Shown here one piece after another: positions 23,509 to 54,632 of a stretch of 64,000 nt of DNA. Every line of letters begins with the position of its first letter. The first letter of the stretch is position 1. The translations under genes were made by a program, and so were the position numbers. The notes under the pieces are model-generated. The model made no database searches. It worked only from the letters and a program-made list of their open reading frames with translations, and was not told the DNA's origin. This DNA is from Lytechinus pictus. Lineage: Eukaryota. The stretch is taken from NCBI RefSeq assembly GCF_037042905.1, contig NC_087251.1, forward strand, positions 47,120,001 through 47,184,000. The letters run 5' to 3'.

Positions 23509-24431
23509 GTAAGTCTTTCATTGATATTTATGAAACTATTCCATCATACAGAAAAGTTGCAACAACAAAGCTTGGCAACATTTTGTGTACAAAGGCAACG
23601 TGATATTTGTGTGACAAATTGGCAGTAGACCTGTTTTTGTTGTTGCTTTATAGCTTTCTAAAGTTGTGGACTGATTCAAAAGTAATTTTTGTCAAAAGTT
23701 GCTGTGACCAACTCTTGACATCAAAATGATTTGGCTCATGAAACTCATGATTGAATAACTGTGATATCATGTGTTTGTCTGCATAACTCGCAATAATATT
23801 TTCTGTCGAGATGATGCGTGCAGAATATATAATTGATCTCACCATGTGGATGTGCCTACAATGTATAATCTGTCTCACACAAATGTTGCTGTGTTTAATT
23901 GCATCTTGTCTGACTGAGGCTTTAGTATAGATACTGCATTCTTTATTCCCACATGTTTAATTAGTATTCCGCTCCTTGAGATAAGCCTTGAGGCTAAAAT
24001 GTGTCCCCTTGACTTTATCCTTAGCCTTGTATGGCTTGCCATTGTCCTTGGCCTTGGGATTTGATCCTTGGATGAGGCCTGGAAATATTTCAAAAAATTG
24101 AAGGAAATATGGAAAGATGCAGAGTTGCGGAGAGTTGCTAGCCAGGGTTTGGTTATTTTAATGACAAAAACATGCTAACTGAAAGAAGTATATAGCGGCA
24201 GCGATTGCATGAATGGCCTGCACGTCTATAGCCTCTTTGAGGCGTTCAAGTGCAGTATTCACAAGACAAGACAAGACAAGACAGAAAAAATGTAACTTTG
24301 GCCAACAGTTATGTCGCTTCACTCCAGTTTATGAACGTTTTTGTGTTGCTGTGGGGTGGCATGATTATTTTTTGTCGGAGCCTTGGACTTGCATTACTCA
24401 TTCTTCATGTTTGGTTCTGTAAAGGTGGTGA

Positions 24432-25660
24432 AAATGATGATGATTGCATTTATGATAATGGTTGCATTAATGATGATGATGATGATTGCATTTGTGATAA
24501 TGGTTGCATTAATGATGATGATGATGATTGCATTTATGATAATGGTTGCATTAATGATGATGATGATAATTGCATTTATGATAATGGTTGCATTAATGAT
24601 GATGATGATGATTGCATTTGTGATAATGGTTGCATTAATGATGATGATAATTGCATTTATGATACTGGTTGCATTAATGATGATGATGATGATTGCATTT
24701 ATGATAATGGTTGCATTAATGATGATGATGATGATTGCATTTGTGATAATGGTTGCATTAATGATGATGATGATGATTGCATTTGTGATAATGGTTGCAT
24801 TAATGATGATGATTGCATTTGTGATAATGGTTACATTAATGATAATGATGATGATTGCATTTGTGATAATGGTTGCATTAATGATGATGATGATAATTGC
24901 ATTTATGATAATGGTTGCATTAATGATAATGATGATAATTGCATTTATGATAATGGTTGCATTAATGATGATGATGATAATTGCATTTATGATAATGGTT
25001 GCATTAATGATAATGATGATAATTGCATTTATGATAATGGTTGCATTAATGATGATGATGATGATTGCATTTATGATAATGGTTGCATTAATGATGATGA
25101 TGATAATTGCATTTATGATAATGGTTGCATTAATGATGATGATGATTGCATTTATGATAATGGTTGCATTAATGATGATGATGATAATTGCATTTATGAT
25201 AATGGTTGCATTAATGATGATGATGATTGCATTTATGATAATGGTTGCATTAATGATGATGATGATAATTGCATTTATGATAATGGTTGCATTAATGATG
25301 ATGATTGCATTTATGATAATGGTTGCATTAATGATGATGATGATGATTGCATTTATGATAATGGTTGCATTAATGATGATGATGATAATTGCATTTATGA
25401 TAATGGTTGCATTAATGATGATGATGATGATGATTGCATTTGTGATAATGGTTGCATTAATGATGATGATGATGATTGCATTTATGATAATGGTTGCATT
25501 AATGATGATGATGATGATTGCATTTGTGATAATGGTTGCATTAATGATGATGATGATTATTGCATTTATGATAATGATGACAATGATTGCATTAATGATG
25601 TTGATGAAAATAGTTGCATAAACGATGATGATGTTGATGATGATTGCAGTAATGATGATG
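24432..25660 (+). repeat. ~33-42 bp minisatellite (GAT)n-TGCATTTRTGATAATGGTTGCATTAAT with uninterrupted Asp/Cys/Asn reading frame
   Basis: About 30 units. All length variation is in multiples of 3. The frame reads (DDDDCIYDNGCIN)n to the stop at 25698. Confidence 0.95.
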
Positions 25661-27955
25661 AATACAATATTTTATTGTCATTTAAATGCCATAAATGATA
25701 GTATGAATACATTTGTCTCAAGAAATTCAAATGATGGCCAGAGAATGTCCAAGGCCAATAAAGGAATTACTGATCTTTAGTTGGTTTAAATTCTTCTGAA
25801 CAAAACTAGGATAAAGGGGATTTATATTAGAGAATGAAGGTCTGAAATCTTGAAAATAGAACAAATCATTAAAATGAAGAAAAATAAAGAAATTTGTATA
25901 TATTTCCAATGATGGCTTAAGTTTGTGAAAAACTATACAAATAAAAGGTTTGCTTTGAACATGTTAATATTTTCAATGATTTTTGTGTTATTGTTGCTAT
26001 CAAAGTTTATAACTTTACATTATTGTGAAGAGTTTTGAGGGTAGAATCAGATACTGTACTGTCAAAGCTGTTTGGCATTTGTGATAATTTGCAATTATTC
26101 TGTTGATGCATGTCTGCTTAAAAAGGTGAGAAAAGAGCGACGATAAATAACAGATGTTGAGATCATCTGAATTATAAGCATTGTTTGCCATGAATAAGAT
26201 ACAATGCTATCAAGTGGAATGACCCAGTCTCGTCTGTTTACTCTGTTCCTGATGTTGTACCATTGTTCATTTTCTTGTCACTCTTGTGTGGTCTAGTTGA
26301 GCGGGAAGAGAAACTCCTTTTGTTGTCAGCATGTGAACTGCACCAACCAACAAAAGAAATACAAAGACAAGTGAATTATCTTTGTGTACCAATTGTATGC
26401 GATTTTGGCTGTTTACCAGGGAAAATCTGTTCTTCTTTTTTTGACTTCCACCTGTCGATTTTATGGGAAGGTTAACTTTTATTCTACTTTTTTCTTTTGT
26501 GCTATTGAAAAAAAGTGTGGTTCATTTAATATTGATCCATAATTCAAAAGCAAAGCATATAGAAAGACAACGCTGTAGAACTAGATTTTAATCTTGCTAA
26601 ATCTTAATGTATATTTCCTGCACAAGGCACCAGCCTGATCCTAATCAAAATGATATTTTTAAATGAATAACAAAAAATATGTACATGCAATGGGACATCT
26701 TTATGTATGTCTATTAAGACAAATTGATTGAACACATTGATGCTAAAATGAAATAAATGCCTGTTATGTTGTTGATTTTTTTATTAGTATTTTTTACACG
26801 TAGTCGACTTTATTCACAAACAACACTTGTAAAGTGTATCAAACAGGAGTTCAGACAAAATTACCACAAAGTAATGATGTATTACAAACATATCATCATA
26901 AAATGAGCCAAAACTATGGATACTTATTTTTCAATTATATATTCATTCATCTCTAGGTAATCTCTTGCTCCAGTATTTTTCATTTTTTTATCAAGATTTC
27001 CTTGAACCCTTCAGACGAATAATGGTCAAAAGAAGTAACACTGCTAAAGAATTCTGCGGTTCAATGCTCCATCCAAATGCTAGTTTTTGAGGGCTCTGAA
27101 CTTCCATCTGTCCTTATCTTTGGCATAAAAATACATATTTGTATGAAACCTTAATAAAGAGAGCAATTGTCCGGGGTATATCTTATTTTGAAGCCACCAC
27201 CAGATGGGTTTAAGTGGTGTTATTAACAAATATTTTCTTTTTAATTTCTATGAAAGTCCATGGACAGTGTATGAATCACCATATTAATCATCAAATTTGT
27301 TTTTTTTATTAATTTTAAGGAGAAAATGCTTTTTATGTCTCTGCTTTTGTCAGGCCGCCACAAGATGGTTTGAGTGGCATTTTTAACAAATATTTTCTTT
27401 CATATTTTTCATCTGCAATTCTGCATGTGTAAATCATAGGAATTTTTTTTGAAGGTGAAAATGCCTTTTGAGTCTCAGATTTGGTCATTACTGTGAGCTG
27501 GTTTTATTGCATACATGTGTCACCTAAGGTTTTAAGGGGATATATTTTTTTTCTTTGTGGACGAGAATAATGAGATTATCCTTTGTATCTAATATTGCAC
27601 CTGACTTCATGTGGCTTCGTTATCAAAAAGGTTTCAAATCCCCTCTAGGCAGTATGGATGTATCAATTTAAAATATAATTTATGAACTTTATTCTTCTAC
27701 ATTCTGTATGAGTTTCATGCACCGTATGTGAAGGCAGATGTTACATTGTACCGACTTGATAACTTCAGATTGTGTTATTTGTGTATGATTTATCCTGTCA
27801 TAGAGAAGTATGTTTCATGTCCAAATAATTCTGATTCCAAAGAATTTACCTTTCTAAGACAATATAGCCCATAGCCTTTGATATGAATGACTATTATTAA
27901 TTATAATTTATTATAATGAAAAGGTCATTCGAAATAAATATAGACAATTCAGATC

Positions 27956-29357: not shown

Positions 29358-31653
29358 CAAAATACTTCTTATTATGTCTATGAACCATACTTTGATTCTC
29401 CTCTCATGGCCTATTCTGATGCAATTTTTAGAGGAAAAATATCTTGGGGCTTGGGCTTTTTCACCCTAAGAATACTCAAAAGAGCCCCCCAAAATCCTCA
29501 TTCACTAAAGTGTGAAAGCTTATGAATGCAATGTTGGAGATGTAAGCAGATTTTGAAAAGTACCCCCTGAAAATGAAAAAGTTACGTTTTCCTTGGCATT
29601 TTTACAGGGCTTTTGAAAATTCCTTGGCCCCTCGGCCCATGGCCAGTTCTCAATGTCATTTTCACCAGTGTAAAACAATACTTGACATAATAGATGTTCA
29701 TGAGTAATTGAGGATGCCTGACTAGTTGGAAGTCGATTAATCGTGAGACCTGACAGCTTTGAGAAAATGGCCCCATGTCATTTGGCATTGAACCAGATGG
29801 ATGGGAAGGACAATGGTCAAATTACAAGTATAATTTCCTCCCAAGTGTTCTATAGAATTCAATAATGTAGTGAGGTACCTAATATGCAGGTAGATTTTCT
29901 TTCATATTTTCTTTATTTTTATTTTCATTTATTCAAAAACATTTTTTTTAAACTTATCATCTGAAATTTCATTAATTTTATCATTTGTGATTTATTTGAT
30001 TTTCATTTATTTACTTATTTATTTGTTTGTTTATTTTTCATTTATTCATATTGTTTGGGGGTTGGTTGGAGGTGCGTGTCCACTATCCGAAAAAATTTAA
30101 GGGTAGGTGCCCCGGAATAGGATCCCAAAACCATTCATTCACTTTAATGATCATTGACAAGATTTTAATTTTTTTCAATTTATTAATTAATTAATTAATT
30201 AATTTTTTTTTGGGGAAGGGGTTGGGATGGGGGCGTTGGGTGGGGGGGGGGGGGGCAGAAGTCCTTCCAATTCCCCCATAAGTACGCCAGTGGTCATACT
30301 ATTGGTTGTCATCACTAACAAACATGCCCAGATGTTAAAGGTTAGATTGCTTTCGTTTCCTTTGCCACCGGAGGGTTTGTTCTGAATGGATGTGAATTTT
30401 AACAGATGTCCAGAGTTATGGCAAGAGATGATGTCAAAATATGGCCATCTATTCCACAAAAAACATGTTTCATGTAAATAATTACAATTTTTAATTTATT
30501 TTCAAAAGTCTGATAAGGTAAATTATTAACCAAGAAGGTGAAACAAGAAAAAAAAGTAATAGGTAAAAGGAGAACAATATTAATTCTTCAGTCATATTAT
30601 GTCTTTCCTCTCATCACTTAATGAGTACACATGAGAAAATGAAGAAAAAATTTGTGATATTAGTTTGGAATATTTTTGAATGAAAATTATTAATGAAGTT
30701 TTAGCTTCGGCCTAATGATTTTTGTTTTGGGGTACTCTCGTTATCAACATCACTACATGAGCTTGAATCTAGGTGCAACAGTTTCATTAACATCCATGAG
30801 ATCCCTATCGAGATAGGAAATCCAGGTTGTTAATGCAAATGTCTACCAAAGTATGCAAGAGATTTTAGGAAACTGATAATGACCAGCAAATCAAATCACA
30901 TGATGATTATCATCGATGTCATCCAAACAATTAACATCTCGTGCAAAACAAAATTTCAACATTGCATTTCATCAACTCTAAAATTATATTCAATTTTAGA
31001 TGTAATTGGGGATTTTGTATTTTATACCAATTTGAAGCTGGTTTCATAATACCATTCAGCCTTACAGAAGGGAAATGGCATATTTCTACTTTAATCCTGT
31101 TATTTGCATTTTTCAAATCAATTTAATGATGTTTGACAGCTTGAATTAATTTTACACACCATTGGAATGATTATGATTACTGATGGGCTGTTACACTTCC
31201 ACTGGTTTATGGACAGTCCTTGGATCATTTGTTATCGTTGTTTGTTTGGAATGTGAAAAATTAACCGGCCTTGTCAATCCTAAATCTGAAGACGGAATTA
31301 TTATAGCCCTTTGAATTATGTATATTGTCTTGATGACCTTATCCTGTCATGTCTATTGGTGATACAAGAGTATAACTATAGTATATAGGCGTATATATTA
31401 AAATGCCTGTTCCCAGCCCCAACCCCTCCCCGTTGGATATATGTTTTTCAGGGATTGTTGAATTTGTCATTTCATTATTTATTATCATTATTATTATTAT
31501 CATCATCATAATTATCTAAAAGCGGAATGTACCATAGGGGGAATATAATATTTACATGTAATTGAAGGACCGAGGGGAAACCAACAGCGGCAACAGGTTT
31601 ATTCTATCAGCAATAGAGCAGGAGACATTAGGGGGGAGCAGCACAGGTCTATG

Positions 31654-33285: not shown

Positions 33286-36200
33286 TTTCTCAATAAAGCT
33301 GTTCTAATGCGACAACGGGGGTATTGATCATCTCCAGGCTCCAGTGATAATTAATTCTAGTTATTATTATCATTTTTTTATTTTATTCTATGTAGTATAA
33401 TAATTTTCATTATTGATTTATGCTTTTTTTTTTTTGGGGGGGGGGAGGGGATTTTGGTGAGAGGATTTTTAGAGCATGAATTTTGTGAGGTTGATGTAAA
33501 TTGATTTCATAAACGTCATTGACAACCACAGCAGACAAGGACTTTTCAAACCAGCAGTTCACAAGGGAAAATAGTGAAAAGAGAATAAGGCAAGAGAGGA
33601 GCACGTGCCCTTGCCACAAGATGAAGTTCAACAAAGCAGCGCGGAGCCCACACTAGGAAAAACAGAATCCTGGTTTTCACCCCTCGGGCCGCTCCGGATG
33701 ACTCACGGTGACTCCGCTTGAACCAATCTCCACGTTTTTCTCTCCTTTTTTTTGTGTGCCCCCTCGGTGGGGGAAAAAGCGGAGGAAATGAGTTGTATAA
33801 CTGTGAAACACATCATCTCTTTTGTGGGGTCAATATTTTGACAGGCATTTTTGTGTGTGGGTATTAGATGGAATGCCTGAAGATAGCCCATGGGGAAAGC
33901 GATGTGATGATCTAGTTGAAGGTATCTCGAAAGGGCACACCACTCTTGAAAATGATTCAGAAATGATGAACTTGTCTAACCAACCATGCCCTAATCTTAT
34001 GAAGGAGATAGGAATCACTCGGGAGATGAGTAAGAAAAAGGGAGTTCTCTTGTAAGACTAAATTATAAAAAAAACAAAATCAATTGAGCAAATGGATCAA
34101 TAGTTGAAGGGCTTGGCAGGAAATACAATGTAAACTAAAGAATTTGAGCATAAATTTCATTTCATTTAGATAAAACTGCTATATTTTTTTGTGACGTAGA
34201 ATGTTGAATCACCCCAGGTAATATCTCCCAACATAACTCGTGTTTACAATGTAAAAAATCAAATATAGTCTTAGTTCGAGAATGCTGCAAGAAATAAATT
34301 TCATTGGCTCATACAAAGAAGAGGGTCTGGCTATGAAAACATTGTAATTAGATACTAAAAAAAAACATGTTAGGCAAAGTTACGTGTACAATGATGAATC
34401 TCGAGCCATGAGGTACATGTACACTGTATACGATGTAGGAAATAAAATATATTAATACTTCATAGGATTGTGTGAAATCCTGAAATGCCTATTGTGGTGA
34501 TAATTCTGGTTCGAAAGTTCTGAAAGGATTCATCACCTTTTCTGAGGATGATTCAGGACTCGTGCATTTGCATCCATGGCTAACCATGCCCAACAATGTA
34601 ATGCAAAGGAGAACAGTTGGAAAACCTTTTGGGATGAGTAAGAAAGCGAACTATGATAGATAGACCAGGGAATTCCCTGGATAGACCTTACGTTATCTTA
34701 ATATCTGTGAACTGTTGATTATCAAGCAGTTCGTCTCGCGATGACATGAGTTAAGTACCCACCAGAGCACTTATTAACAACACGATGGGACATAATTCAT
34801 TGCATTGCTCAAGATAGTACGATATGGACACAGTGTCCAGCGCTGCCAAGTAGTACTGAGTCTGCTTTTCAGTAATCAATATGAAAAATGAGAATAATAC
34901 TGATGGTTTCGTGCAAAATAATTTCTTAAGTTTCATTTTTATGTGTTCTTCTATGGTGTTACTTTGGAAATACTGATTCCTCACCAAAATACTGATTCGT
35001 CACCAAAATACAGATTTCCTCACCAAAATACTGATTTTCAGCTTTTAAAAATTATTGGAATGTTCTTGTTAAGTTCGGCAGCTCTCTATATTAATTTTTT
35101 GTGCATTAAATTTTAATACCTTGTCCTGTGAACATTCATGTACAGTACTTCCGACCCACGACCCACAGCCCACATCCCTCATTTTAATATAAAATAACTA
35201 GTACAGTACCTATATCACCCATAGGCGAGTGCAGGCCTTGTGCATCATCATATCCTGTATGTTAGGTATGATGTACGATGTAAACACCTCACAGCGTAAT
35301 AACAAACACGGTACAGCCGGGTTATTATTAGATTAAATACTGTAGGCAATAAATTTTTAATAACATGTTTACTGAGATACAAACTCATTAGAAGTACCAC
35401 CAGGGTTTCGTCAAAGTTCATCATAATCACAATTACACAACACTTTCAAATTTTTATACAACACTCTTTACTACATGTATATGATATTTACAGTAGTTTA
35501 AACAGGGAAGTGGAACCTACCACTTCCCTGTTTAAAGAAGAGCTTAAAATTTCTAACAATAATGTGTAATTCTTAATAATCAATTCTCAGTAAATAAAGC
35601 ATGGGCCCTATTGCAGAAAAGTTACTATTATATTAACTTTGCTATCCAATGGTATCCTTCATGGAATCCTTGATTCTGATCGGCTTGCTTACCATTGTTA
35701 CTATGGTAATTACCACTGGATGGCAAAGTTACTATATTAACTTTTATGCAACGGATCATGGTTGTTTAAACTGTTAAACAACTACTGTAAGGTTCCTACA
35801 GGAAACAAGGTTCAAATTTTAAACAGCATTTTTACTGTCTTTCTTGCATCTGTAGGTACCCACATGTACTGTACATGTAAACAAATATTATTTCACACAA
35901 AATTGTTCACTGTAAAATATAGAAAATCTCTATTTCATCTAAAATAGGTGACTGAAAGTCTACTTTAGATTACATGTACAATGACAAAACATATGCTATT
36001 TTGACTGAATAACAGTTTCTAAAGGTTCCTTTGTTTTGAATCTTGCCAAAATGGCAAGTTGTTTCGAACAAGACTGGTGAAAGTTTTGATTAAATCTGAC
36101 CCCTTCACTAAAATTTGACTGAATAAAAAATGTCATTATGACTATAAGGTGCCTGTTTTACACAAAGACGTGTATACTTTACACAACGACGTGAATGGTA

Positions 36201-37740
36201 AATCTACCATGAATCTCCATGTGTGTACCATGGAAATCTTGATTGTGATTGGCTGTTGAGCCAAGTTATGGTAGTTGGCATAATGGCAAAGTAACAAATA
36301 ATATTATTTGTGAAATCAACATGTAGGCTATTTTTTCTGCACAACAAGCACTTTCTAATAGGTAAGCTTCTCTTGAATTTTACCTAAATGAAATAGCAAA
36401 TTGTTCTGAATAAAAGATGAAAAATCAGAGAAGCAGACTAGTGAAAGTTTGGATAAAATCTGACCCACCCCTAAAAAGGTTAACGTCATTCTGATGTAGG
36501 GAACACTGTTCCACATTCGATCCAATACATAAGAGACTGAAATGTCACATACATTGAGTGATTTCAAGTCCGGTGTTGGCCTTGGTGTTGGTGTTAGTGT
36601 TGAAATTTGGATTGCTTCCCCTAGCTCCAAAACTAATTCAGATTTTGTAAAACTGATCCAGATCACATGATTGACATCTCAACAACTAGTGAATGACTTT
36701 TCGGGACCATCTTCATGTTATTTTTGGTGTTGTAATCGTGTAAAAATTGACCTAACACCAACACCAAAAGGTCAACACTGAACTACAAATCACCCATTGT
36801 ATTTCAAAATGTCTTTAAACCTGTCACAAATCTTTGTTCTTTTTAACCTGTAAATAATAATGGTTGATAATGATCAATATCTATTTTTTTAAATATAAAT
36901 AGTCAAAAAGAGATGTATACTTGTTGGAGAAATAAGGAAATTCAAACTGATGATAAATAAAGTACACGCACCAGAATAATTAAGTGAACTACAGTACATT
37001 GTAGGAAAGATTTCCCTTAAATTTGAACATCTGCCAACATTCCAACTACTTGTACCATCAACATTGCTAATTGGTTGAAAATACTATTCATGTAATAGTT
37101 GTCAGATTTTTTGTTTATATCGTCGTAATACATGTACACGTGACAGGCATCATTTAGTATAATTGATAGCTTAGTACCAGCACTTTCCAGTAAAATATTG
37201 CACCCTACCCTATGTTCATGTAGGTCGATAGATTACTATACTGTACAGCATAGGGGTGGGATGCAATAGTATTATGCAAATTTTTGCCTTAATTTAATGA
37301 ACTTTCAGAAATCAGCCAGTCTGAATGCTAATTAGTTTCAAGTGAATTCTCATCTCCCTTATTTACCTTACATGTTTTGTGATTTGGTCTACTGGTAGAA
37401 AAGTATCTGCTTGTGTCAATGCACATAACATTTTTTTTCCTGAACTATAATTGAGATGTAACTAATGACAATAAAACTATTAAAAGTATACATATTTTTT
37501 AGACAAGGGGTTGGTTTTGCAAAATCTGGTCATGAATAGTAAATGGAGAATCCTCCAGGGTAAGAGCAAGAGTGAAATTGAAAAATAAATTGAACACCTA
37601 CACCTGTATAGCATACAGTCACTCAATAAAGAATGTAATATATCAGCAGAGCAATTCAAGCTTGCTTGATTATCTTTTTATCATAGTGAAAGTGAATAGG
37701 AGTATCCATTATATAGCCTCGTTATAGCGCCATAACCTAA

Positions 37741-37969
37741 GTGCCTGTCATAAATTGATTTTTGAGGGCTATAAGGTCATAAGTCGATGCAGTCCCACAG
37801 AGAGCAAAAGCCCTTTTAGCTCTCAACGGACTACAGTGTCTCATCATACCTTACCCTTTGTGCCTGTCATAAATTGATTTTTGAGGGCTATAAGGTCATT
37901 AGTCTTCATGTATGTAGTCCCACAGAGACTGAAGGCCCTTTTTGCTCTCAACGGACTACGGTGTCTCAT
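37741..37969. repeat. ~119-bp tandem duplication downstream of BTBD6 (probable 3'UTR region)
   Basis: GTGCCTGTCATAAATTGATTTTTGAGGGCTATAAGGTCAT at 37741 and 37860. Confidence 0.85.
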
Positions 37970-39721
37970 CAATCTGGTCAGGTGATCAGTTTCACCTCGT
38001 AATGTACAATGCATACATTGCCCTCCGTCATTGCGAAACCAACCGGCATTATATATTTGGTATCGGGGTAATGACTAACACATGTGTACTGAATCCTATT
38101 AGGAGCCCATGTAATAATTGTATCAGGAAATTACAAGTATAATTCGATTTTGTGATATCCAAAGGTCAGTGTAATTGAGGATATGTAGGTTTGGAATTTT
38201 AGACATTTGACAGATTAACCTCCTTTATGGAACAAGTCATAAAATTCCAAAAAATGACCCGCAAGTTCTTGTTTACATGTTGGACAATGGATATATCAAA
38301 CTATCGTAAATTATAACTCTTTCTGATTCATTTGTTTGGAAGTGAAAATACCTTTATCAATCATTGTAACAGATAACATCACAGCATCATTAGCCTATTT
38401 CGTGTTCCAAATTCTATGTTTCCCACAATGTTTGTATCATAGAGCTGGGTATGAGGAACTCAGTGAATTAATTAATTCCAAAACTATCAATTGCAATAAT
38501 GGGGCAGAATTTGAAAGAGTAGAGTTTTAGAAAAGATGCACTATTATTGACAATTTTTTGTATGCACTCCAGCCAAACCAAATTCTATATTTGTGCACAA
38601 AAATCATCAAAATGTTGTGAATTTAGTGTCTGAAATGTATAAATCATTTCAATCTTTAAGTAAATTAACTAAGAATTATAAATGTAGTCATAAAATATAA
38701 ATGGAAATAAGGTATATAAATTTTGGTATGAATGTAGCAAATCCATTTCATTGACATGGAAATGTGTATATGACTGGAAGAAAGTATTTCGAGTTTCTCA
38801 ACTACAATTCTAGTGTAGTATTGCCTTTCCATTTTAAATGAGAAACACTTATTTCCTCTTTCCTGAGATCTTTTATTCAATTCTTGAAATAATTTCAGTC
38901 ACATTATAAGTGAAGATGGTCACTGCATTTATGCTTCCAGTCCAGTATATATTAGAAATTTGGAAAATTCTTATTTTTCCTTTATTTCATCATGTATATA
39001 GTTACCTCTGTACCCATTAGCAAATATTACTTATTCTAATAATCCCTTGTTATAACTCACAATGTGTATATTAGATTGGGATTAAAGGAAAGTATCGTTG
39101 CTGATACAGATAAATTACAATATATGCATGCCTGCATGGACATCTACATGTACTTTCTACATGTATCTGAAACTGTGCCCATTTTTATTTGGGGCCGGAC
39201 TGGGTCTACAGAAAATGTTCATTATGAGATATGGTAGCATTGTCAGCTGGTCTTCAACTTCTTAACTATATTTTCAAATTATGAGGCTAGCCTTATTTGG
39301 ATTTTCACAAAGTGATGGATTTCACAACTTAAAATGTATTTTGACTTTTTATTGTTATGGTAGAATAATAAATATTGACATATCCAATAGAACTGAATGG
39401 AGAAATGACAACACTGTAATTTCGTGAAAACTAACCCAATGAATTGCTCTGACTGATTTTCACTTAGTGACAGAGGCAATTAATTGAAATTCATTTATTC
39501 AAGAATTATACTTTCTACTTCTGGTATCTGTGCAATTGAATGAATCACATGTAATGTTGTTATTTCAGATAAAAATCTGTAGGGAGATAATTAGCAATCC
39601 AATGATTGAAATTAATTTGTTACAAATTCATCCATTCAAAATTAAATCATTAATCATTTGAACTAAATGTAGGTGATGGAGAGATACTGTAGCTGCATAG
39701 TGTAATATGAAGGTCCATTCC

Positions 39722-40754
39722 TTATGCGTAGAATATGAGCTCAGGTATTTGACCACCTTGGACTCCAGTCCCATTCGTGCTTTCTGGAGAACACTGAAAC
39801 TGGAAGGTCACATTGTTGCTGGTACTTTCTGTCAGTCCTTCCTGTCCAAAATAACTTAATTCACTTCCACTTAGTGTTGCACTTGCTGTATAGTACACAT
39901 GGGGTTCGACCTGGACGGGGTGTGGGAACGCGACCATAAACGTGGTACTGGATCCATCTGAAAAGAACTTGGTATTGTTCTCGGCAAGAATCTTTCCTCC
40001 TCGCTTGAGTTCTATTTTCACCTTGTACTCTGCACCACCTGAACTGGAGCCGTACAACCCGAAGCCAGCGATGAATATCCGCCTGTCAACGGCAAACTGG
40101 ATACTGTCACACCGACCCCTGTAACGCCACTGGTTACTCCTGTAGGCGGACGACTGAAAGCGATGCACCGTGCAGGTTCGCAGTCCTGCGCGCTGCTTAC
40201 AAGGAAAGCGGAGCTTGGGCTTACTGTCAGCAGTGTAGTGAAGAAATATATCTGTGGTTTCTTCGAGAGTGATGACACCACTACGAGCTACGCTATTGGC
40301 AAATTCCTTGAGAGGCATTGTCGGGAGTCGAAGGAGATAAAGAGCAGAACCTAGAACCTTGCGGAGGTTGTTTGGAGTCACCACCAAGTCCTGCCTGGAG
40401 CACTCCGCATCTGCCCAACGCATGGCTGCATGGAAGAGGACAAGTTCCTTGACATTCAAGGTCTCCCGCTTCAGGATGCACTCCAAAGTATCCTGGTCAA
40501 CATCCACAAAGCTGTCTGATCCTAAAGCTACTTCAGCCTGGGCATCAATAACCTCCCAACATCGCTGCATGAGGTCCGGTTCTTCAAACAAGTGGCTTTG
40601 ACTCAACAGGACGCATGCATTCCGTGCACTCAGACTTCGCTCCAAGTACTCAACGCATGACCTGGCCAGATGAGGTACGAGATATTTCTTTGCAGCATAG
40701 AGGGTATCCAAAACATTCTCTGGAGTTAAGTCAATCTCATCACAGTACATGTAT
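39722..40754 (-). CDS. BTBD6: BTB/POZ-BACK-PHR protein (BTBD6/BTBD3 family), last coding exon
   Basis: TTACAG|A TAC ATG acceptor. YMYCDEIDL..TLYAAKKYLVPHLA (BTB end), BACK domain, and PHR domain HRFQSSAYRSNQWRYRGRCDSIQFAVDRRIFIAGFGLYGSS...STNGTGVQGGQIPELIFYA*. Confidence 0.96.
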
Positions 40755-40957
40755 CTGTAAAGGAAAAAATGTTAAATTGAAAACAAATTTAATATTTACA
40801 AGGATATAAAAGCAATGGATTTGAATGGAATAATATTGATCCATAGATTCTTTTGACAAGTCAAATCGGTAGGGACAGATGAATTTCAATATATCTTAGC
40901 AATGTACAAAGTTGGGCAGAATTCAACTTATGTAAGGTTGACTTAACAAAGTTTTCA

Positions 40958-41570
40958 AAAGGACAAGTCTACCCCAACAAAAAGTTGATTTGAATAAGAG
41001 AAAAATCCAACAAGCATAACACTGAAAATTTCATCAAAATCGGATGTAAAATAAGAAAGTTATGATATTTAAAATTTTTTGCTTAATTTCACAGAACAGT
41101 TATATGCACATCCTGGTCGGTATGCAAATGAGGAAACTGGTGAGGTCATCCACTCACTACATGTATTTCTTTTGTATTATGAAATATGAAATATTCTTAT
41201 TTCCTCCTCATTGTCAAGTGCAACAACAATTAATTCCTCCTGACAATGTGGAATAAGCATTGTTTAATACTATATGGTTCAGTCAAGTTGGTCCTTACAT
41301 GTATTGTCAAATATGTAAAAAATGAAATATTGTATAATTCAAACAATAAAAAAACAAAAGAAATAGTGAGGGACATCATCAACTCTCTCATTGACATGTC
41401 ACTGAATTGTGCATATAACTGTTGTTTGAAAAATAACTTAAAAACGTCCTAACTATCTTATTTTACATCCGATTTTGATGAAATTTTCAGTGTTATGCTA
41501 CATGTATTGTCGCTTGATTTTTCTTTATTTATCCAAATCAACATTTTTCTGGGGTGGACTTGGCCTTTAA
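40958..41570. mobile_element. Kolobok-like MITE family A inside the BTBD6 intron
   Basis: AAAGGACAAGTCTACCCC ... GGGGTGGACTTGGCCTTTAA. Confidence 0.85.
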
Positions 41571-41683
41571 TGTATTATATATGTACATGTTTGTTCTCTT
41601 GTGCCCTCAGTAGATGTTTAAAAATATTTCAAACAGAATTAGAATGTGCAGTAACATTTTCAAAATAGTAAAAGTAATTTGAA

Positions 41684-41790
41684 AATTTGATGACACTAAC
41701 ACATTCTAATAATTAGAATGTGTAAGTGTCATCAAATTCTGAATTTTGGGGGGAACAAAATGAGTAATTTTGTTCCCCCAAAATTCAGAA
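41684..41790. repeat. Two abutting ~55-bp near-perfect palindromes
   Basis: 41684-41738 (27-bp arms, 1 mismatch) and 41737-41790 (~24-bp arms, 1 bulge, 5-nt loop). Confidence 0.9.
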
Positions 41791-41822
41791 TATCAAAGCA
41801 AGACTTGAGTTGAATTACTCAC

Positions 41823-42406
41823 TTGAGAAGGGTAAGGAAAGCTTCCGGCTCTACATCAGGTGTAACAATCTCAGAGGTATTCTCTGCTAGGTCTCCATAA
41901 AACATGGCAAAGAACACCGAACTCCCTGTTGCAAGGACGTACTTATGGGCAGGTATCCTTTGAGCTGTATTCTTAGGTCCAACCAAGAACGTAACATCAC
42001 TCATCAGTTCATTGTTAAACATGACAGCATTTCTGTCTCGTACGGTTGCACCACGATGCCAGTTATCACAGGACCAGAGGGACGGAGATGATGATATTGA
42101 GGTTGCTACCGAGGTTGCTATCGTAGGACTATCAGGTTGTATGACATCCAGGGTTTCGGTATTGACGGAACAATGGTTACCATCCAGGCGGTTCTGATAT
42201 GACTCTGCGGAGTTTGAGACCTGACTGGCAAGAAAACTGGATCTTCTGTTGCAAGTGCGCTGCTGAACCTGCTGCTCCATCTCATCTTTCTCCGCTCCAG
42301 GATTCTGATTATTCATCTCCATCTTCCGTTGTAACTTTCGCTTTATCCTGCAGAAGATGTGCACTACTTTCCGAAGTTTAGCGAGCTTGTGTTTCCGAAA
42401 GGGCAT
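41823..42406 (-). CDS. BTBD6: BTBD6/BTBD3-family gene, first coding exon (N-terminus and BTB domain)
   Basis: NWHRGATVRDRNAVMFNNELMSDVTFLVG..IPAHKYVLATGSSVFFAMFYGDLAE..PDVEPEAFLTLLK. Donor AA|GTGAGT (phase 2) joins in frame to 40754, giving 1617 nt = 538 aa + stop. The exact start Met is uncertain. An acceptor upstream at 42528 implies a 5'UTR exon. Confidence 0.93.
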
Positions 42407-44697
42407 CTAAGATTATTGTGAGGAACAGACCAAAGACAACATAGCTAATTCAAATGCTTGAGTATGACTGATCTATCCAAACATTGCAATTTTGCTGATG
42501 GTGTCCAAGTATTCTTTTCCATGTAATCTGAAAAAGAATGTCAAGGAAAATCGTCAGTCTCAAATTAACCTAAATATACATCCATTTATAGATTTCTGTA
42601 TTTCTGTTGTACTTTATTATGGAGAATGGAGATTGCATGAACCTTGTTAAATAAGAAATTTTGAAAACTTACATTTTTTTACTGAAAATTTTCACAAAAT
42701 TTCACCAAAAGTATGCACCAAATCCTTCAATTTCACTTGACAGAATGTGAAAATGACCCAAATGACAAGCTCAGTCACTTTGCTCCCTCGCTTTAAAAAA
42801 AAAAAGAGATTATCCGAGCTGCCCCCCCCCCCAGCAAAAAATTTCTGCGTACGGCCATGCTAACACAAACAATAAGTTAAACTTCAATTCTAAGATAATC
42901 TGCAGGTGAAAATCTACAAATTGATAAACCGTCTACCTTTTTTAAAGTTAGAGCAAAAAGGAGACCTTGCCATATATTGTAAATCCTATCCATCTACAGC
43001 AAAATGCCATGGAGTATGATTGTGATGATTAAGTCATCCACTGTGCTGGATGATCTCTGTCCCAAATTTCTCAACGAAAATAGATATCTTTAAAAGCGTA
43101 GGCTTAACTGCAGAAGACGGCATAACCTTGTTTTTCTTTATTATTATATGTAGTCGTGATCGTTTATATATGCCAAGGAGGTGACCATACCATTCACTGC
43201 AAAATAAAGACTAAGATGCTGCATAGACCGTGTAACAGTTAGACATGATGTAGTCCATATTTTGCAGTGCAGTGAATAGTATTCATTATAATCCTTTCCC
43301 AAAATCTGAGAAAATAGAATAATACTCACACATTCCAGATCAGTCAAAAGTTCCTTCTAGTAAATAATGATCCTTTATGTTCAGAATAATGTACTAATAT
43401 GGTGTTCAGAAAATTAGGTATGGTACTGTTTGAGTTATAGTCGGACATATAACTACTAGTACTACAACTGTATCCGTGTATATGTTTTTATCCTGTGAGT
43501 ATATAGCACTGCTCTGCTGTCAGCGCGCGCTCGAGCTCTCGATCTATTCGTGCATGAGCCCCCCCAGGGTTAGTCGCTTACACACAAACAAGGCACACAT
43601 ACACACACACACCCTCACACACACAATGTGAGCTCGTCCAGCAAAACAACTCGCGTACTACAGCTGTGCAATCAACAAGACCCTGTGTGTCATATGATAA
43701 CAAAGAAAGCCCAAGGGACCGCTATTTTTGTGAGTCAGTGATGTGCGGCTAGTCTTTAGGTTGTGATTGTCTAATCCCGTGGACGAATTATAGGCTTTGT
43801 ACTGTCACCACCAACTCCCGAAACCCAAATCAGATGAAAAGATAGATTTAAATAATACCAAGGTGTAACATTGTGGAACCGAAGATTACGAGGGGGAAGG
43901 GTGGAGGCCGCAGATTTCGCGCATGTGGTGAAAGTCGGTCCATTTGGTCGAAAGTAGAAGGAAAACATGTGATGGATGAATAACCAATTTAGTTGGACAA
44001 GCGGAGAACAACAAAGGGTGTGCTTAGTCTGCAGGCACAGACCCTGATTGGAACTTTGATCAACAAGTGTGCCTCCACGCAAAGACTAGCACATACAACA
44101 CTTGCTGTTCCAATACCTGAGCGAGAGAGCCTTCAGTACACAAGGCATGAGTAGGCTGCACATTCAGACCCTTAACTCGAGTGAAGGGTTTGCCCAGCAG
44201 ACTAGGGTGTGCTTGTGTTAGCCCTCTCCTCTCATCTCGGGGGCGTCAATACTAGGCCCATATAATACCATGTTTTTCCAGACAGATGCGGACTACGTAT
44301 ACAAACAATCAAACAAAAAATACGGAGAGGGTGGGGGCACACCCAGGAGGGATTTGATACTTCAGATTTCACAACCATGCATGGGCAGTGCCGTATCGGG
44401 TGCGGGTACGGGCACTTGTCTCGGGCGCCACTTTTTAGGGGGCTCAAAGAAGCAGGTAATAGATAAAAGGGTAAGAAAACATTCTAAAGTTTATCTCCGA
44501 ACAACGAAACAAACTTCCGGAAAGTGAAAATTTGGACGGGGCACAATTACGACCCATGCAAAACAAAGATATTGGAAAGGTCGTTATTTTGGCACTTGCC
44601 CCTGGTGCTTCATTTTTTGCCCTGTATTACACGCCACGTCTGATCGTAAAGCATATACCAGCAAATAAAATTGTCATCCTATAGGCCTATATCATTC

Positions 44698-45773: not shown

Positions 45774-47717
45774 TATACACTTCAAAATGAGTCGTTTATA
45801 CAAGATAAAGATACAAGATAATTTTATCGGTACCTGAATGCAAACCTAACATTGAAATTGTGCGTCCTATTGCTTTCAAATAGCTACATAATAAAAGAGA
45901 CACAAGTCATGTAGTAAAACTAATCATAGCCATAAGAAACTCACTTACGTAAACAAAATAACTGTCTGCATTGGGCTGCATTACCCCTTCAAATTTATAA
46001 TTCGCAAGTAAAATGACTGTCTGCTGCGAAGTCCCCCCACACGAATTCTTAATTTGATAAAACTACAAAAAGTATAAAGCTATAGTCGACTTTATATTTT
46101 TCTATAACGATATCATCAAGCTATCCAGTCTTTCCTGCGAGTGAGTCATGTTGAATTCTAAATACGAGTCGGCCCGTTTGGTTTCAATATTGACTTATAA
46201 TTTTAGTCTGTTAAAGATAATTTGTGATAAGATAATGATTAATGACAGACCGCAGACTTGCCCGAGGGCATATCAAACTGTTTTAAAAATCAATTTGAAA
46301 GTGGTGTAAGATGGCGATCACGACATCAGCCTAATGATGTTGTTGCATTCCCGGGTGCCGTGCTATGTACAATATGCCCCCAAGTATGCCTAACATGCCA
46401 ACAATTTTTTTCCTTTGTATTTCAAAGCAAAAGTCAAAACTCCAGCTAAGCCTGCATGAATTAATGTAAAAGAAATATGTTTGGAGTTTGAAATGTGTTG
46501 AATTAAAGGTAACATGCGTAAGAGAAATCAGCTTTAAAGAGATTGTATTTAATTAGTTATCATAATATTACTCGTATTAATACTTACTGCTCTTTTCACT
46601 TGGTCATTTTGGGAGAGTTGATTGAATGATAACTGAATTGTGTTAGTTCTTATTCTTGATTTTTATTTTTTTTTCGTTATAAATCGTGCGTTGGATGATG
46701 GCGAACATTAGAACCAGGGGTTACTTAGCATATACGTTATAGAAAAATAATGCCATAATTATCACTATGAAATTAATTAATTGATGTCTCTGTATTTTTA
46801 TTAAGAAACCATGAAATAATGCGATGTTCAGAATAAAAAATACTCACCACGAGTTGATTGGAAGAAAATTTAACACAGCCTTACAGGGTCGATCGTTCGA
46901 TGTCGTGTTCAATAACTGACTTGTGTTTTCGCTATTGGGCAATTCCATAAAATATGTACGTCCGAGTCCGACCCCTATATGTGGGACCTTCATAAAATTA
47001 TCTGTCTCTGATTTCCTGTTCTTTAGACAGTCTGTAATACTCTCAAAATTACCATGACTTGGTCAGTGTATATGAGGTGAAGTAAAAATTGAGAGAAATG
47101 GGGGTCGGATGTACAAAAAGGTTAATTATTTTATGGAATTGCCCTATTCAAAATGTATCTTCCCTATTGATATATAATTTTAGACAGATTGGCGACTGAA
47201 AAATCCTTGAATGATCATACTAATGAAAAATTACAAGATTATCACGCTGAGAATGCATGGTTATTTTCTTTCTAAAAATTGTCATTATTTTCGTACCCAA
47301 ATAGTCCGAAAGGCATATATTTTCTCAGAGCCACCGGCCGCTTATTTAAACTAAAAGAACGGGAAATGATCACTTTCATGGCTGGACGTGGATTTTTTTT
47401 TTTCGGGGGGGGGGGGGGGGAGGGGCAAGACGCATATATTTTTTTAAAGGAAATCGAAAACGAGGGGGGCGAAGCACTGATCTGTCAGTTTGGCGAAACG
47501 ACTGAGCATGTCATGAGTGCGCTTGAAGAATTTCGTGCACACTTTTAGTGAATTCGTGAAAGATGTTAGAAAAAAAAAATGAGTTTTTGAAATTTGTTGG
47601 GGAGGGGGCAGTTGCCCCATTTCCCCGCTGCGTACGGCCATGATTGTTTTCACAATAATTGCTCTGAAGTCGAAAAAAAGTAATGTTGAGTGAAATACAC
47701 TCATCCCGATCGGACCT

Positions 47718-48303: not shown

Positions 48304-50712
48304 AGCTGCCTCCATTTGGTGAAATAAAGCTCGTTCAAGAAAAGATTATATTCTTTAATTGATTTGCGAAGAATGAAAGTAATTGTATGATTGTAATGGG
48401 AAATTCCCTCAACCTTCCTTCCAGAAATTATAGGAGTACTTCCCGTTGATTTTTTTTAATCATATAGAGGTCAAAAAGGGATAGGATAAGGTAGGGAATT
48501 CTTGGTATATGCTACTTTTCCCCCAAGCACCACAAAGGAAGTGCTATCATGTCTTTCCTGTATGGTATATCTTATCATTATCGAAGTGGACATACCACAA
48601 TAAAAACGAATAAGCAAAGATAATGATTATTACAGTCATCCTCAAAATCCCCACACTTCCCGCGCTTTGTTTTCATCGCCGATAAGAAGGATGTCGCATG
48701 AAATGAATAGATGATCATCTTCGGACAAAGCTCCGGGCCCGGTCTTACAAAAAGTTAAGATAATAATATTCAAATCACACTCAAATTATTGATCCAAATT
48801 GTGTAGTTAAGAGGTAGGATCAATCGCAATTTGAGTTTGATTTAAATTTATTGTAACTCTTTGTGAGACAGGGCCCTAGTTATAAGGTATTGTGAGGTTT
48901 TCTTGTTTACCTTATTTCGGTTATCCACTCGCCCTTGAAGTGACCCCTCCCCAGAAAGAAAAAAGTGAAATTCCGATCCTCTGTTTTTGAGGGTATTATT
49001 GCTTCAAGTGAAAGTGATTCTCTATCTGCTCCTCGTCCATGTATTGAGTTTTTTTTTAATAATCCTTGTTCCAAAATTATTCAACGTGCTTGATCTTCAT
49101 GCATTAATTGCGTTTGATCCAGAATTATTGTTTATTAATCATTATAATTCCATTTCTTAAAAAAAAAAGATTTATATTTATTTAGTTATTTTCTTAAATT
49201 TATTTGTTTGTTTATTTCATTATTATTTACTTGACGAATGGATTGGTTTTTCAGAAAATTCGTATTCTAAACTTGACAACTTTTATTGTCATTGCACATT
49301 TGCAGTTGTCGCAGTTATTGAGGACATTTACAATTACAGGGCTTAAAAGGGACCATAGACAAGAAATATTTCTTGCTTTGATCTGCAGATCTACCTTGAA
49401 ACCTATATTTTCCACGTTTTTGCCAGCCTAAATAGTGTCTCATAAGTTCTACATTTTATAAGGGTTATACCCTTTCTATAAATTGGCACTATGGTGTTGA
49501 AATTTGTATTTGCCCCTATGGTTTTTGCAAATGCGCATTGGTCGTGCCGTAAAACAATGGGGACGACTGTGCTCCGATTTTTTTCACGCGTCCATTCGCG
49601 GCCCATCGTACATTAGCGCCCAAACGGAAGATTTGTTTATTTATGATTACATCACATTCCATATCCTGAAAGGTAAAGTTTCGGAAAGATCGAATATCAA
49701 CTCGGTATAGACTTCAAACCCATTATTGGTGTCATAGAAGACAATGAACAGCAGCTATCTCGTTGATTAAACTTGTCGAACGAAATGAAAAACAACTTCC
49801 GGTAAACACTTCCCGTTGTCCCATCACCTCGCCGCCCAAACGGAGTTTTCAGTAAATAAATAATCCTGTCCATGACGACATCGAAATCCTTTCCGATTCC
49901 AATCCCATCATTACCTACTTGAGTTCATCGATTATTTTTATCAACTAAAGATTGAATAGGATTATTAGGGATACCGTTGGGTGTGGATTAGGGGGATGCG
50001 GTTTCTCATTAAGGTGGGTTTGTCTGTTTCCGCGTTGCACTCCTTGGTGTTTATTCAGAAGTTTGAACAGGTGAATTGGCTTACCATGAGTCGATTTGCT
50101 TTAGTCTCGATGCCCTGTTAATCATGGACCCTAATGACTTAAAGTAAATTCATGTTTAGTTGGACATTGTCTTTGAAATGTCCACACATAATGCACTTGG
50201 TTCTATACCTCCATGGTTTTAGTGACCACAATTTATTGCCCGTTGATATTTGCCGCCCATTCACCGTTGCCTCGTGGCGCCGCGCGACTGCAGAAAGGGG
50301 CATGATGCTAATAACGAATGGTAAAAACAAACTCGCAAATCTGATGAAGAGACAGCGATAAAACAAAGGCTCTGAATATTTTTCCCTTCTCGTAGGATAT
50401 TCATTTTTTCATGATTTAAAAAAAATTATTTTGCATTATCAAAGAAAGAAAACACATCGTTGCATTAGCTATTTCCGTTTTAAGAGATCTCATGAACGAG
50501 CCGTGAAAGAGAAGATCAGAATCTCTTTCACATCCCAAACACATGTAGCTGTGAGTTTGATCGCACATTGTAACGGCATTACAAATTTCACTTTCTCTAT
50601 TTTAAAGCATTTTTTCATAGCAAAGTGAGACTATAGGCGCCACTTTTCCGGCGGCGGTGGAAACATTGAAATCTTAACCAAGGTTAATACGTTTTTGAAA
50701 TGTCATTGTAAC

Positions 50713-51313
50713 TTAAAGGTCAAGTCCACCCCACAAAAATGTTGATTTGAATAAATAGACAAAAATCAAACTAGCAAAATGCTGAAAATTTCATCAAAAT
50801 CGGATGTAAAATAAGAAAGTTATTACATTTTAAAGATTTGCTTATTTTTCACAAAACAGTGATATGCACAACTCAAATGAGACAGTCTATGATGTCCCTC
50901 ACTCACTATTTCTTTTGTTTTTTATTGTTTGAATTATACAATATTTCATTTTTTATGGATTTGACAATAAGGACCAACTTGACTGAATCATATAGTATTA
51001 AACAATGCCCATTCCACATGTTCAGGGAGGAATTAATCGTTGTTTCACTTGACAAGGAGGAGAAAAATAGGATATTCCCTATTTCATATAATAAAATACA
51101 AAAGAAATAGTGAGTGGATGACGTCATCAGTCTCCTCATTTGCATACCCAACAGGATGTGCATATAACTGTTTTGTGAAATTAAGCAAAACTTTAAAATG
51201 TCATAACTTACTTATTTTACATCCGATTTTGATGAAATTTTCAGTGTTATGTTTTTAGGATTTTTCTCTTTTTATTCAAATAAACTTTTTGTTGGGGTGG
51301 ACTTGTCCTTTAA
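50713..51313. mobile_element. Kolobok-like MITE family A
   Basis: TTAA-AGGTCAAGTCCACCCC ... GGGGTGGACTTGTCCT-TTAA. Confidence 0.88.
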
Positions 51314-51414
51314 AAAGACTATGGACCTACATAGTTCATGAAATATAATAATAATGAAGTTCTGATATAGCGCATTTCAAACCTGTGAGGACTCTGAATG
51401 CGCTTTACAGAAAT

Positions 51415-52575: not shown

Positions 52576-54092
52576 TAAACATAATCAAAATTATTCAATA
52601 GTTGTTTTTAAAGTCAGCACTGCTGCTATATTGAATCTCGTAATTCATGCGACACAGCAAGAGGCGTTCCACTTGTTAGTCTTTAGAGTAGCCCCGAACC
52701 GAATTGCTTTATTGGCGTTTTAGTTCAATTTACATGTATAAGTTTACTTAACATTACTTGTTTATATGTTTCATTTAAGTAGAAATATTAATCAACAATT
52801 GCAAATGAAGTCATGGTAGCAACATAGGGCAATAAATCAGAGAAAAAAATAATGAGGAGCAAAGTATTTCCTCAGTTTTGCCAGTGCTCACAAGACTTGG
52901 CCCACACATCAATTGGTTTTAGAGTGAAATATGCATTGTTGCCATGGTAACTGCACATTGTGATAATAATAAATCGGGGTAAAATCTTGCAAAGCTTCCT
53001 CAGTTTTCCTAATAACCATAAGAACTTGGTACACATGTGAGTGACAACGTGCTCTGTACTATGTTGCCATGGAAATAAAATAAAACAATAAATCAGGGAA
53101 AAATCTTGTGCAAGAAATAACTTTCTCTATTTTTTGCCCAATCCTCACTTAATTGGTACACACATTGGTCTCGGAGTGAAGATGTGCAAGACATATTTGT
53201 TTGTGTATGTCTGGCACTGTGTTACCATGGTAAATTCATATTATGAGCATAATAAATCGAGAATATACCTTGCGGAGCGAACTACTCCCTCAGTTTTTTT
53301 CCCCCAATACTCAGTCATGAGACTTGGAGTGATGATGTGTTGTGTTCTGAGTTGCAATGGAAATGACATACATTAAATGAGTTAAAAATCTTGTGGAGTG
53401 AACTACTTGCACTGTTTCTACCCAATCCTCATTATACTTGGTACACACATTGATCTTGGCGAGAAGATGTGCAAAAAAGATTTTTTTAATGTGTCTGGTA
53501 CTGTGTTGCCATGATAACTGCATATTATGCCAATAATAAATTAGGAAAACTCTTGTGGAGCGAACTGCTTCCTCAGGTTTTGCCCAGTGCTCATGAGACT
53601 TGGTATACCAGTTGGTCTTGGAATTAAGACGTGCATGTCACATGTTTTGCTGGGAACTATGTTGCTATGCGAACAATATATCAGAAATAATAATAATAGG
53701 GATGAATGCTATTTTAATTCATAAATGTTCCTCACAAAATACTCTTGTGAAAGGATATGAGTATAGTAATAAAGATACGAATGAAGTAACTTCTGAAGGT
53801 TTCCATGGCAAAGAAGAACGAGTGTCGAGGTTTTTCACCATGTATTCTTTGTGGGCATGTGTGGTCTTGGATGATGTGATTGAAAAGAAATGTGAATGTT
53901 AGAAAATTGTTCTATGAGTTTATGATTTATCGTGTAAGAGAAATCATGTTTATGAATGTCTTTTCAGTGATGCAGCTCAAGTAGTACTGATTTTTCAGTA
54001 ATTTGTACTGAAAAAAAAAATGAGAAAGATACTGATGGTTTCATGTAAAATAACGATTTCTAAAATTACAGTTTTCTGTGTTGTCCTATATG

Positions 54093-54505
54093 CAGGGTGC
54101 TACATAAGCACTTGCCCGATTGCCCAGGGCAAGTAAAAGTTAGAGTCGGGCAAGTGTTTTGAAGTAAAGACCCAAACTACTTGCCCGAATTGGGAAAGCA
54201 AAATTCTCACAGTGGAATGACCAAAATTAGGGTCGATATTTTTTATATGATATCGACCCTAATTTTGGTCATAGCGGGCAAGATAAAATCACTTTGGAAA
54301 AATACATGCAAAAACAATCAGTTCATGTCAAAAGACAGAAAAGAAGTTCAATGGTTTATAAGACCGCTATACTTTCTTTTGAAGAGGTAAGACTTTTTTT
54401 TCAAGGACTTTTTCGGGCAAATGAAATAGTGAAGTATATTCCAACTATTTAAAAATTTACTTGCCCAACCGGGAAAGTGCTTCTAAAAAGTTATGTAGCA
54501 CCCTG
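54093..54505. mobile_element. hAT-like MITE
   Basis: TIR CAGGGTGCTACATAA / TTATGTAGCACCCTG. Perfect 8-bp TSD CCTATATG (54085-54092, 54506-54513). Confidence 0.92.
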
Positions 54506-54632
54506 CCTATATGGTATTTCTTTGAAAATACTGCTTTCCTACTGATTGTCAGCTTTAAACATAATGAAATGTTCTTTTTCAGGTTGGCAGGTCTGTATAA
54601 TTTTTCCATCACTGTCATGTTATTCTCTGCAG

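Follow-up and report, generated by a model that had tools for sequence, protein, structure and literature searches.

In the sea urchin Lytechinus pictus, a complete BTB-BACK-PHR gene of the BTBD3/BTBD6/lute family lies on the opposite strand inside the fifth intron of BRF1, and the same nesting recurs in the same BRF1 intron of other echinoderms, amphioxus, human, a nemertean and a bivalve. The window analysed here comprises 64,000 nucleotides of contig NC_087251.1 (assembly GCF_037042905.1, positions 47,120,001 to 47,184,000, forward strand), and all coordinates below refer to it. The explanation that best accounts for the whole body of evidence, and that we consider likely, is that BRF1 acts as host of a single antisense BTBD3/6 guest and that the nesting arose once, in the protostome-deuterostome ancestor or earlier; that it has been retained mainly because the guest is trapped within its host is about as probable as not.

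The host gene is BRF1

BRF1 is encoded on the forward strand with the following structure, in which CDS stands for coding sequence.

17482-17668, forward strand: BRF1 coding exon 1, beginning at the ATG and encoding the zinc ribbon (Pfam Zn_Ribbon_TF, E = 2.9e-12; 98% identity with S. purpuratus BRF1; donor GTGACT)
18085-18162, forward strand: BRF1 exon 2 (splice sites and reading frame; tblastn with orthologues)
18996-19169, forward strand: BRF1 exon 3, first TFIIB repeat (Pfam TFIIB, E = 1.8e-15), followed by a donor of U12-type appearance, GTATCCTTT
20854-20885, forward strand: BRF1 exon 4, 32 nucleotides, HMLLDLSDLLQ
23436-23508, forward strand: BRF1 exon 5, whose last base is CDS nucleotide 544 (..HINAPAI plus G; cumulative CDS of 544 nucleotides; donor GTAAGT)
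23509-54632, forward strand: BRF1 intron 5, the host intron, phase 1, 31,124 bp
54633-54782, forward strand: BRF1 exon 6, start of the second TFIIB repeat, DPCLFIQRF... (Pfam TFIIB, E = 1.9e-10; aligns to yeast Brf1 residues 178-226)
55615-55708, forward strand: BRF1 exon 7 (Pfam TFIIB repeat; tblastn)
56900-57026, forward strand: BRF1 exon 8 (tblastn)
near 57815-57904, 61233-61778 and 63496-63558, forward strand: further BRF1 exons, the gene continuing past the end of the window

According to the reading frame and the splice sites, exons 1 to 5 total exactly 544 coding nucleotides, and their translation ends in ...LCQELHINAPAI (...HINAPAI) plus one base, after which the donor GTAAGT follows. 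Exon 6 starts at 54633 behind the acceptor ...ctgcag, where the Asp codon is completed and the frame reads (D)PCLFIQRF. Pfam placed a TFIIB-type zinc ribbon in exon 1 and TFIIB cyclin repeats in exons 3, 6 and 7; together with the alignment of exon 6 to yeast Brf1, this indicates that intron 5 separates the two cyclin repeats. Exons 1 and 3 to 9 are 89-98% identical to S. purpuratus BRF1. The C-terminal exons lie beyond the window, and the Pfam BRF1 domain is present in this collinear S. purpuratus orthologue. The host is sea-urchin BRF1, the TFIIIB subunit that serves RNA polymerase III (Pol III).

An original prediction, made from the sequence of the window alone, had described the host intron as a phase-1 intron following CDS nucleotide 544 (NAPAI/DPCL) and as about ten times longer than any other BRF1 intron. 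The sum of the exons and the measured intron length agree with the former, and the latter was a fair description: the lengths of the remaining BRF1 introns in the window are 416, 833, 1684, 2550, 832, 1191, about 790, about 3300 and about 1700 bp (0.4-3.3 kb), so that intron 5 is about 9.4 times as long as the next longest.

Two further observations concern the introns of the host. Intron 3 (19170-20853) carries the donor GTATCCTTT, and a second motif, TCCTTAAT, ends about 17 nucleotides before its acceptor, which makes it look like a U12-type intron of the minor spliceosome. When the orthologous loci of amphioxus, nemertean, bivalve, sea anemone and priapulid were aligned by tblastn, the match read through exon 3 into the residues RIL in all five lineages, suggesting that the donor and type of this intron are ancient and conserved across Metazoa. 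Within intron 5, a 42-bp minisatellite of about 27 copies, AT-rich and with ATGATG runs, occupies positions 24434-25576.

The nested gene is an independent, expressed transcription unit

The guest was delimited by its reading frame and Pfam domains and by RNA evidence, the latter consisting of two 2026 stranded runs of the same species, depleted of ribosomal RNA, and two assembled read sets. Its parts are given below (UTR, untranslated region).

39722-40754, reverse strand: last coding exon, with the end of BTB, then BACK, PHR and the stop codon; the 3′UTR extends below 39722 to at least about 39000 (Pfam; RNA junction; one-strand coverage)
40755-41822, reverse strand: coding intron of 1068 bp, GT..AG, which holds a high-copy repeat (21 stranded RNA reads and two contigs)
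41823-42527, reverse strand: start-codon exon, with CDS at 42406-41823 and 5′UTR at 42527-42407
43330-43472, reverse strand: non-coding first exon, upstream end approximate (junction 42527/43330 supported by both reads and contigs, with one contig extending to 43472)

Translation starts at the ATG at 42406, the first coding exon ends at 41823 (donor GTGAGT) and the second extends from 40754 down to the stop codon at 39722. The resulting protein of 538 amino acids contains, in this order, BTB (E = 9e-12 and 3e-6 across the two exons), BACK (E = 7e-8) and PHR (E = 7e-48). The splice junction 41823/40754 was found in 11 and 10 stranded reads of the two runs, respectively, and in two assembled contigs, while the junction 42527/43330 revealed an intron in the 5′UTR. 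Coverage of the exons came entirely from one strand, which fits minus-strand RNA under the usual convention for stranded libraries. The mapped exons span about 39000-43472 and are wholly contained in the intron at 23509-54632. These data establish the nested gene as real and independently transcribed: it is spliced and expressed, and it has a non-coding first exon of its own. They bear out the original prediction of a complete 538-residue BTB-BACK-PHR gene antisense in BRF1.

The protein encoded by the large exon is 95% identical to the S. purpuratus 'BTB/POZ domain-containing protein 6-B-like', and the nested protein is 69-95% identical to proteins that carry the names BTBD6, BTBD3 or lute in many phyla. 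A search of the urchin's own genome returned one match at 100%; the next best reached only 45% and presumably represents a different BTB-PHR paralogue. This points to the nested gene as the genome's single predicted BTBD3/BTBD6/lute orthologue. Vertebrates carry a second paralogue, BTBD3, elsewhere in the genome. Compared with its family, the urchin protein has the same domain order and its BACK-PHR exon shares about 70% identity across Bilateria, whereas the N-terminal stretch of about 110 residues is lineage-specific. Among solved structures, its PHR domain resembles that of BTBD2 and its BTB end resembles BTBD6, and an ESM Atlas look-up gave only BTBD6-like clusters.

According to work cited in bioRxiv 10.1101/575910, Btbd6 of vertebrates serves as an adaptor of Cul3 and promotes both the degradation of Plzf and the differentiation of neurons; CUL3 binding and Plzf recruitment are cited there for the zebrafish and Xenopus proteins, and a requirement in neuronal development for Xenopus Btbd6 and the fly homologue lute. 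By analogy with these relatives, the urchin guest belongs to a class of proteins that in vertebrates serve as substrate adaptors of CUL3.

Two high-copy repeats lie in or near the guest, at 40810-41714 (within its coding intron) and at 44025-44248. In the RNA runs, both were covered very deeply on either strand and showed inverted-repeat joints; they are probably derived from transposons.

The same intron hosts the same guest in other animals

In six other genomes (S. purpuratus, Patiria, the acorn worm Ptychodera, which is the hemichordate referred to below, Branchiostoma, Lineus and Pinctada), a BTB-BACK-PHR gene is annotated antisense inside a gene with TFIIB and BRF1 domains. Independently of annotation, the flanking exons were mapped directly by tblastn of the N-terminal half of urchin BRF1 against the orthologous loci. 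In Patiria, Branchiostoma, Lineus and Pinctada, the BTB gene sits between the exon ending in ..INxPAI and the exon starting with DPCL... A homologous intron between ..PAI and DPC.. was found in all nine other genomes examined, with one flank only in S. purpuratus and Ptychodera. The internal intron of the BTB gene has the identical position in all orthologues. Where both flanks were mapped, the host intron has the following length.

Patiria (sea star): about 13 kb
Branchiostoma (amphioxus): about 7.5 kb
Lineus longissimus (nemertean): about 3.4 kb
Pinctada (pearl oyster, bivalve): about 14 kb

At the Lineus locus (L005), the intron occupies positions 9662-13067 of that locus and about 340 bp separate the annotated start of the BTB gene from BRF1 exon 6, which means that the promoter of the guest must sit almost on the host exon boundary.

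For human, the change C>T at chr14:105249697 is annotated both as the synonymous BTBD6 variant c.642C>T and as the BRF1 intron variant c.544+2810G>A (ENST00000547530.7; PMC12052365). The alleles are given on opposite strands and the BRF1 position is c.544+2810; hence BTBD6 lies antisense in the same BRF1 intron. The BRF1 proteins of mammals, frog, gar and bowfin have Asp at residue 182 after INAPAI (INAPAI/DPC), as in the urchins, which makes c.544 the first base of the same codon. The human pair at 14q32.33 thereby matches that of the urchin in guest family, host, opposite orientation and an intron placed behind CDS nucleotide 544, where it interrupts the Asp182 codon between the first and second base; the human host intron apparently measures about 11 kb (c.544+2810 and c.104-8283 in PMC12052365) compared to 31 kb in the urchin. 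In chicken, a selection scan placed BRF1 and BTBD6 together in one interval.

The original prediction had stated that human BTBD6 lies antisense within BRF1, apparently in the equivalent intron, and proposed that the pair predates the split of echinoderms and chordates. The human variant and the Asp182 motif support the former. The proposed age was supported as well and proved too modest, since the nemertean and the bivalve share the nesting, which takes it back before the protostome-deuterostome split. Mapping of orthologues relative to BRF1 intron positions, which had been put forward as a check, placed the guest in the same intron in human, amphioxus, sea star, nemertean and bivalve, and found no such nesting in priapulid, millipede and anemone.

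The nesting is absent from a priapulid, a millipede and a sea anemone

At the BRF1 locus of Priapulus, the intron at ..INVPAV/DPC.. is empty and 416 bp long, and no BTB match was found in the 19 kb fetched. Likewise, the intron of the sea anemone Actinia, at a position identical to that of the urchin host intron (..INLPAI/DPCLYIH), is empty and about 700 bp long, with no BTB-BACK-PHR match in the 14.5-kb locus. Both introns are about 40-75 times shorter than urchin intron 5. The BTB gene of the millipede Chamberlinius is flanked by two hydrolase genes, and no exon of BRF1 lies within 10 kb of it. This un-nested copy also keeps the internal intron of the guest at its conserved position, which indicates relocation at the DNA level. 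Retroposition as the route of relocation was ruled out, as the guest has kept its own intron everywhere.

Conserved non-coding blocks flank the guest in two sea urchins

When L. pictus was compared with S. purpuratus, the intron was found to hold about a dozen collinear non-coding blocks with 70-88% identity, located to either side of the guest. In the same comparison the coding exons were 83-88% identical, and the remaining intron did not align. The blocks include invariant runs of 20-30 bases, a pattern typical of regulatory elements.

26063-26454: most distal collinear block in the intron
33512-34035: largest conserved block, on the 3′ side of the BTB gene (80% identity over 548 bp with S. 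purpuratus; single copy in its own genome)
43633-43999: block just upstream of the first exon of the BTB gene (82% identity over 382 bp with S. purpuratus, collinear; single copy in its own genome)
46165-46378: block between the 5′ end of the BTB gene and BRF1 exon 6, with invariant runs of 20-30 bases
27133-27659, 30306-30426, 31108-31164, 35269-35429, 37561-38246 and 49949-50015: other collinear blocks

The two blocks that were submitted to a single-copy test (33512-34035 and 43633-43999) both proved to be single copy in the genome. RNA depth was nil over 43525-43886, which covers most of the block at 43633-43999; this block is likely a promoter or proximal regulatory region. At the level of sequence comparison, the blocks common to both urchins would fit, weakly and for echinoids, the idea raised in the original prediction that a genomic regulatory block joins a housekeeping Pol III factor to a developmental CUL3 adaptor and its enhancers.

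Origin and persistence of the nesting

Because the guest occupies the same intron, of phase 1, in antisense orientation in echinoderms, amphioxus, human, nemertean and bivalve, with the hemichordate fitting on one flank, a single origin no later than the protostome-deuterostome ancestor is the simplest history. Nested genes are gained frequently, and the BTB gene could in principle have been inserted into BRF1 independently in several lineages, or its position could be an artefact of annotation. Both ideas are exceedingly improbable and were rejected. Of the roughly 15 or more introns of BRF1, it is always this one that holds the guest, and always in antisense, in seven lineages that belong to five phyla; the flanking exons were mapped by tblastn and not taken from annotation; the guest retains its own conserved intron, so it is no retrocopy; and RNA reads confirmed the urchin gene model. 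As for a still older date, the nesting might have been present in the ancestor of cnidarians and bilaterians and have been lost in the anemone lineage and in Ecdysozoa. The host intron at the identical position in Actinia means that the site existed, and one cnidarian only was examined, but its short intron and locus hold no guest and no positive case outside Bilateria is known, so we regard this older origin as rather improbable. The choice between the bilaterian stem and an earlier date rests on that single anemone. In the sampled ecdysozoans (priapulid and millipede), the nesting appears to have been lost.

Regarding its persistence, breakpoints that freed the guest together with its promoter and flanking regulatory DNA would fall inside an essential host gene, and only a rare clean relocation would separate the two. 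Such a relocation seems to have occurred in Ecdysozoa, after which the intron would have shrunk to about 0.4 kb, while the 31-kb size of the urchin intron would reflect the guest, conserved non-coding elements and later repeat insertions. That the pair persists mainly through being trapped in this way is a proposition for and against which the chances are about equal. The Lineus guest nearly fills its 3.4-kb intron, which shows that the pair can be retained without a large regulatory landscape. Alternatively, the pair might be kept by functional coupling in cis, either through antisense transcriptional interference, which the original prediction had named as a possibility, or through a shared bidirectional or internal promoter that also drives N-terminally truncated BRF1 isoforms. 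In favour of such coupling, the human BTBD6 coding variant is annotated as 'upstream_gene_variant' of several shorter BRF1 transcripts, which places alternative BRF1 starts near the 5′ end of BTBD6 (PMC12052365); a human allele at an expression quantitative trait locus (eQTL) raises the expression of both BTBD6 and BRF1 (PMC8435735); and nested antiparallel pairs are the class of overlap best conserved between human and mouse (PMC2330155). However, the shared eQTL may merely reflect proximity, ecdysozoans and the anemone manage without the nested arrangement, and in the urchin the guest exons are covered from one strand, with no unique opposite-strand reads or plus-strand exon near the promoter within 39000-44400. 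We hold functional coupling to be unlikely. The annotated starts of the shorter human BRF1 transcripts lie, in the direction of BRF1, just downstream of the BTBD6 coding variant (PMC12052365), which suggests an internal human BRF1 promoter arranged head-to-head with BTBD6. A stronger version, which we find very doubtful, would have the pair act as a functional unit since the bilaterian ancestor, with the promoter region of the guest also driving, internally or bidirectionally, BRF1 isoforms that lack the zinc ribbon and first cyclin repeat, or with host transcription tuning the antisense guest. If it were true, a CUL3 adaptor that favours the differentiation of neurons would be linked in cis to Pol III capacity, and with it to growth.

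Several points weigh against the account of one ancient origin followed by trapping. The mechanism of trapping is an argument, not a measurement. The human case comes from a variant-annotation table and not from the locus read directly, and the view of S. purpuratus and Ptychodera is partial, as one flanking exon lay within the fetched 10-kb flanks (with no other BRF1 exon intervening). Absence was sampled in one cnidarian, one priapulid and one millipede, and the sample is without insect, nematode, annelid, xenacoelomorph, sponge and placozoan. Regulatory entanglement at depth finds no echo in the sequence either: when the intron was compared by sensitive blastn with the loci of sea star, hemichordate, amphioxus, nemertean, bivalve and millipede, coding exons were all that aligned. 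The search for conserved non-coding elements that the original prediction had proposed thus succeeded in part, with single-copy blocks common to two urchins and nothing that aligns beyond echinoids.

Other features of the window

Outside the BRF1 gene, positions 32-6098 hold about 197 tandem copies of a GC-rich and strongly strand-skewed 30-bp unit (CTCCTCTTCTACCTCCTCCTGCTGGTGGTA), with long open frames on both strands; this array may be a coding or a non-coding minisatellite. A run of 263 N at 7957-8219 corresponds to an assembly gap or to masking. Upstream of BRF1, fragments of reverse-transcriptase-like open reading frames (motif ...YADDTIV...) at 11683-13040 presumably represent a decayed retrotransposon of the type without long terminal repeats.

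Comparison with known nested pairs and regulatory blocks

The overlap of human BRF1 and BTBD6 is already visible in annotation, and its conservation across Bilateria is apparently undescribed in the literature searched. No description of it was found there, although supplementary lists of later microsynteny studies might contain the pair. The main text of Irimia et al. 2012 (PMC3514665) names neither BRF1 nor BTBD6, and neither is named in the supplements of PMC8851819 and PMC2330155.

BRF1-BTBD6 partly resembles the genomic regulatory blocks described by Irimia et al. 2012 (PMC3514665): a broadly expressed bystander is linked to a developmental gene, and in the two urchins compared its intron carries conserved non-coding elements. 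It differs in that the BTBD6-type guest lies itself inside the intron and is not a mere neighbour. Moreover, the conserved elements of BRF1-BTBD6 are known from the sequences of two urchins alone, and the Lineus intron leaves little room for them.

Very few host-guest pairs are known to have been nested since before the protostome-deuterostome divergence. In a 2008 survey that covered human, mouse, zebrafish, fly and worm, ecdysozoans and vertebrates had only three overlaps in common, all of them nested and antiparallel, including Synapsin-Timp and Nbea/Lrba-Mab21 (PMC2330155). BRF1-BTBD6 belongs among such ancient conserved nested pairs: as in Synapsin-Timp and Nbea/Lrba-Mab21, the guest lies wholly within one host intron, is antiparallel and has been kept between protostomes and deuterostomes. 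It is a clean addition to them: intron, phase and orientation agree across at least five phyla. In addition, it comes with a natural control, since an ecdysozoan (the priapulid) and the anemone keep the intron without the guest, and this contrast allows trapping, shared regulatory DNA and antisense coupling to be tested against each other. Whereas those two pairs were found by comparing vertebrates with fly or worm, BRF1-BTBD6 is absent from the sampled ecdysozoans and retained in Spiralia; it was invisible to screens based on fly and worm because ecdysozoans appear to have lost the nesting. Screens that take these two animals to represent protostomes miss ancestral arrangements that survive in Spiralia.

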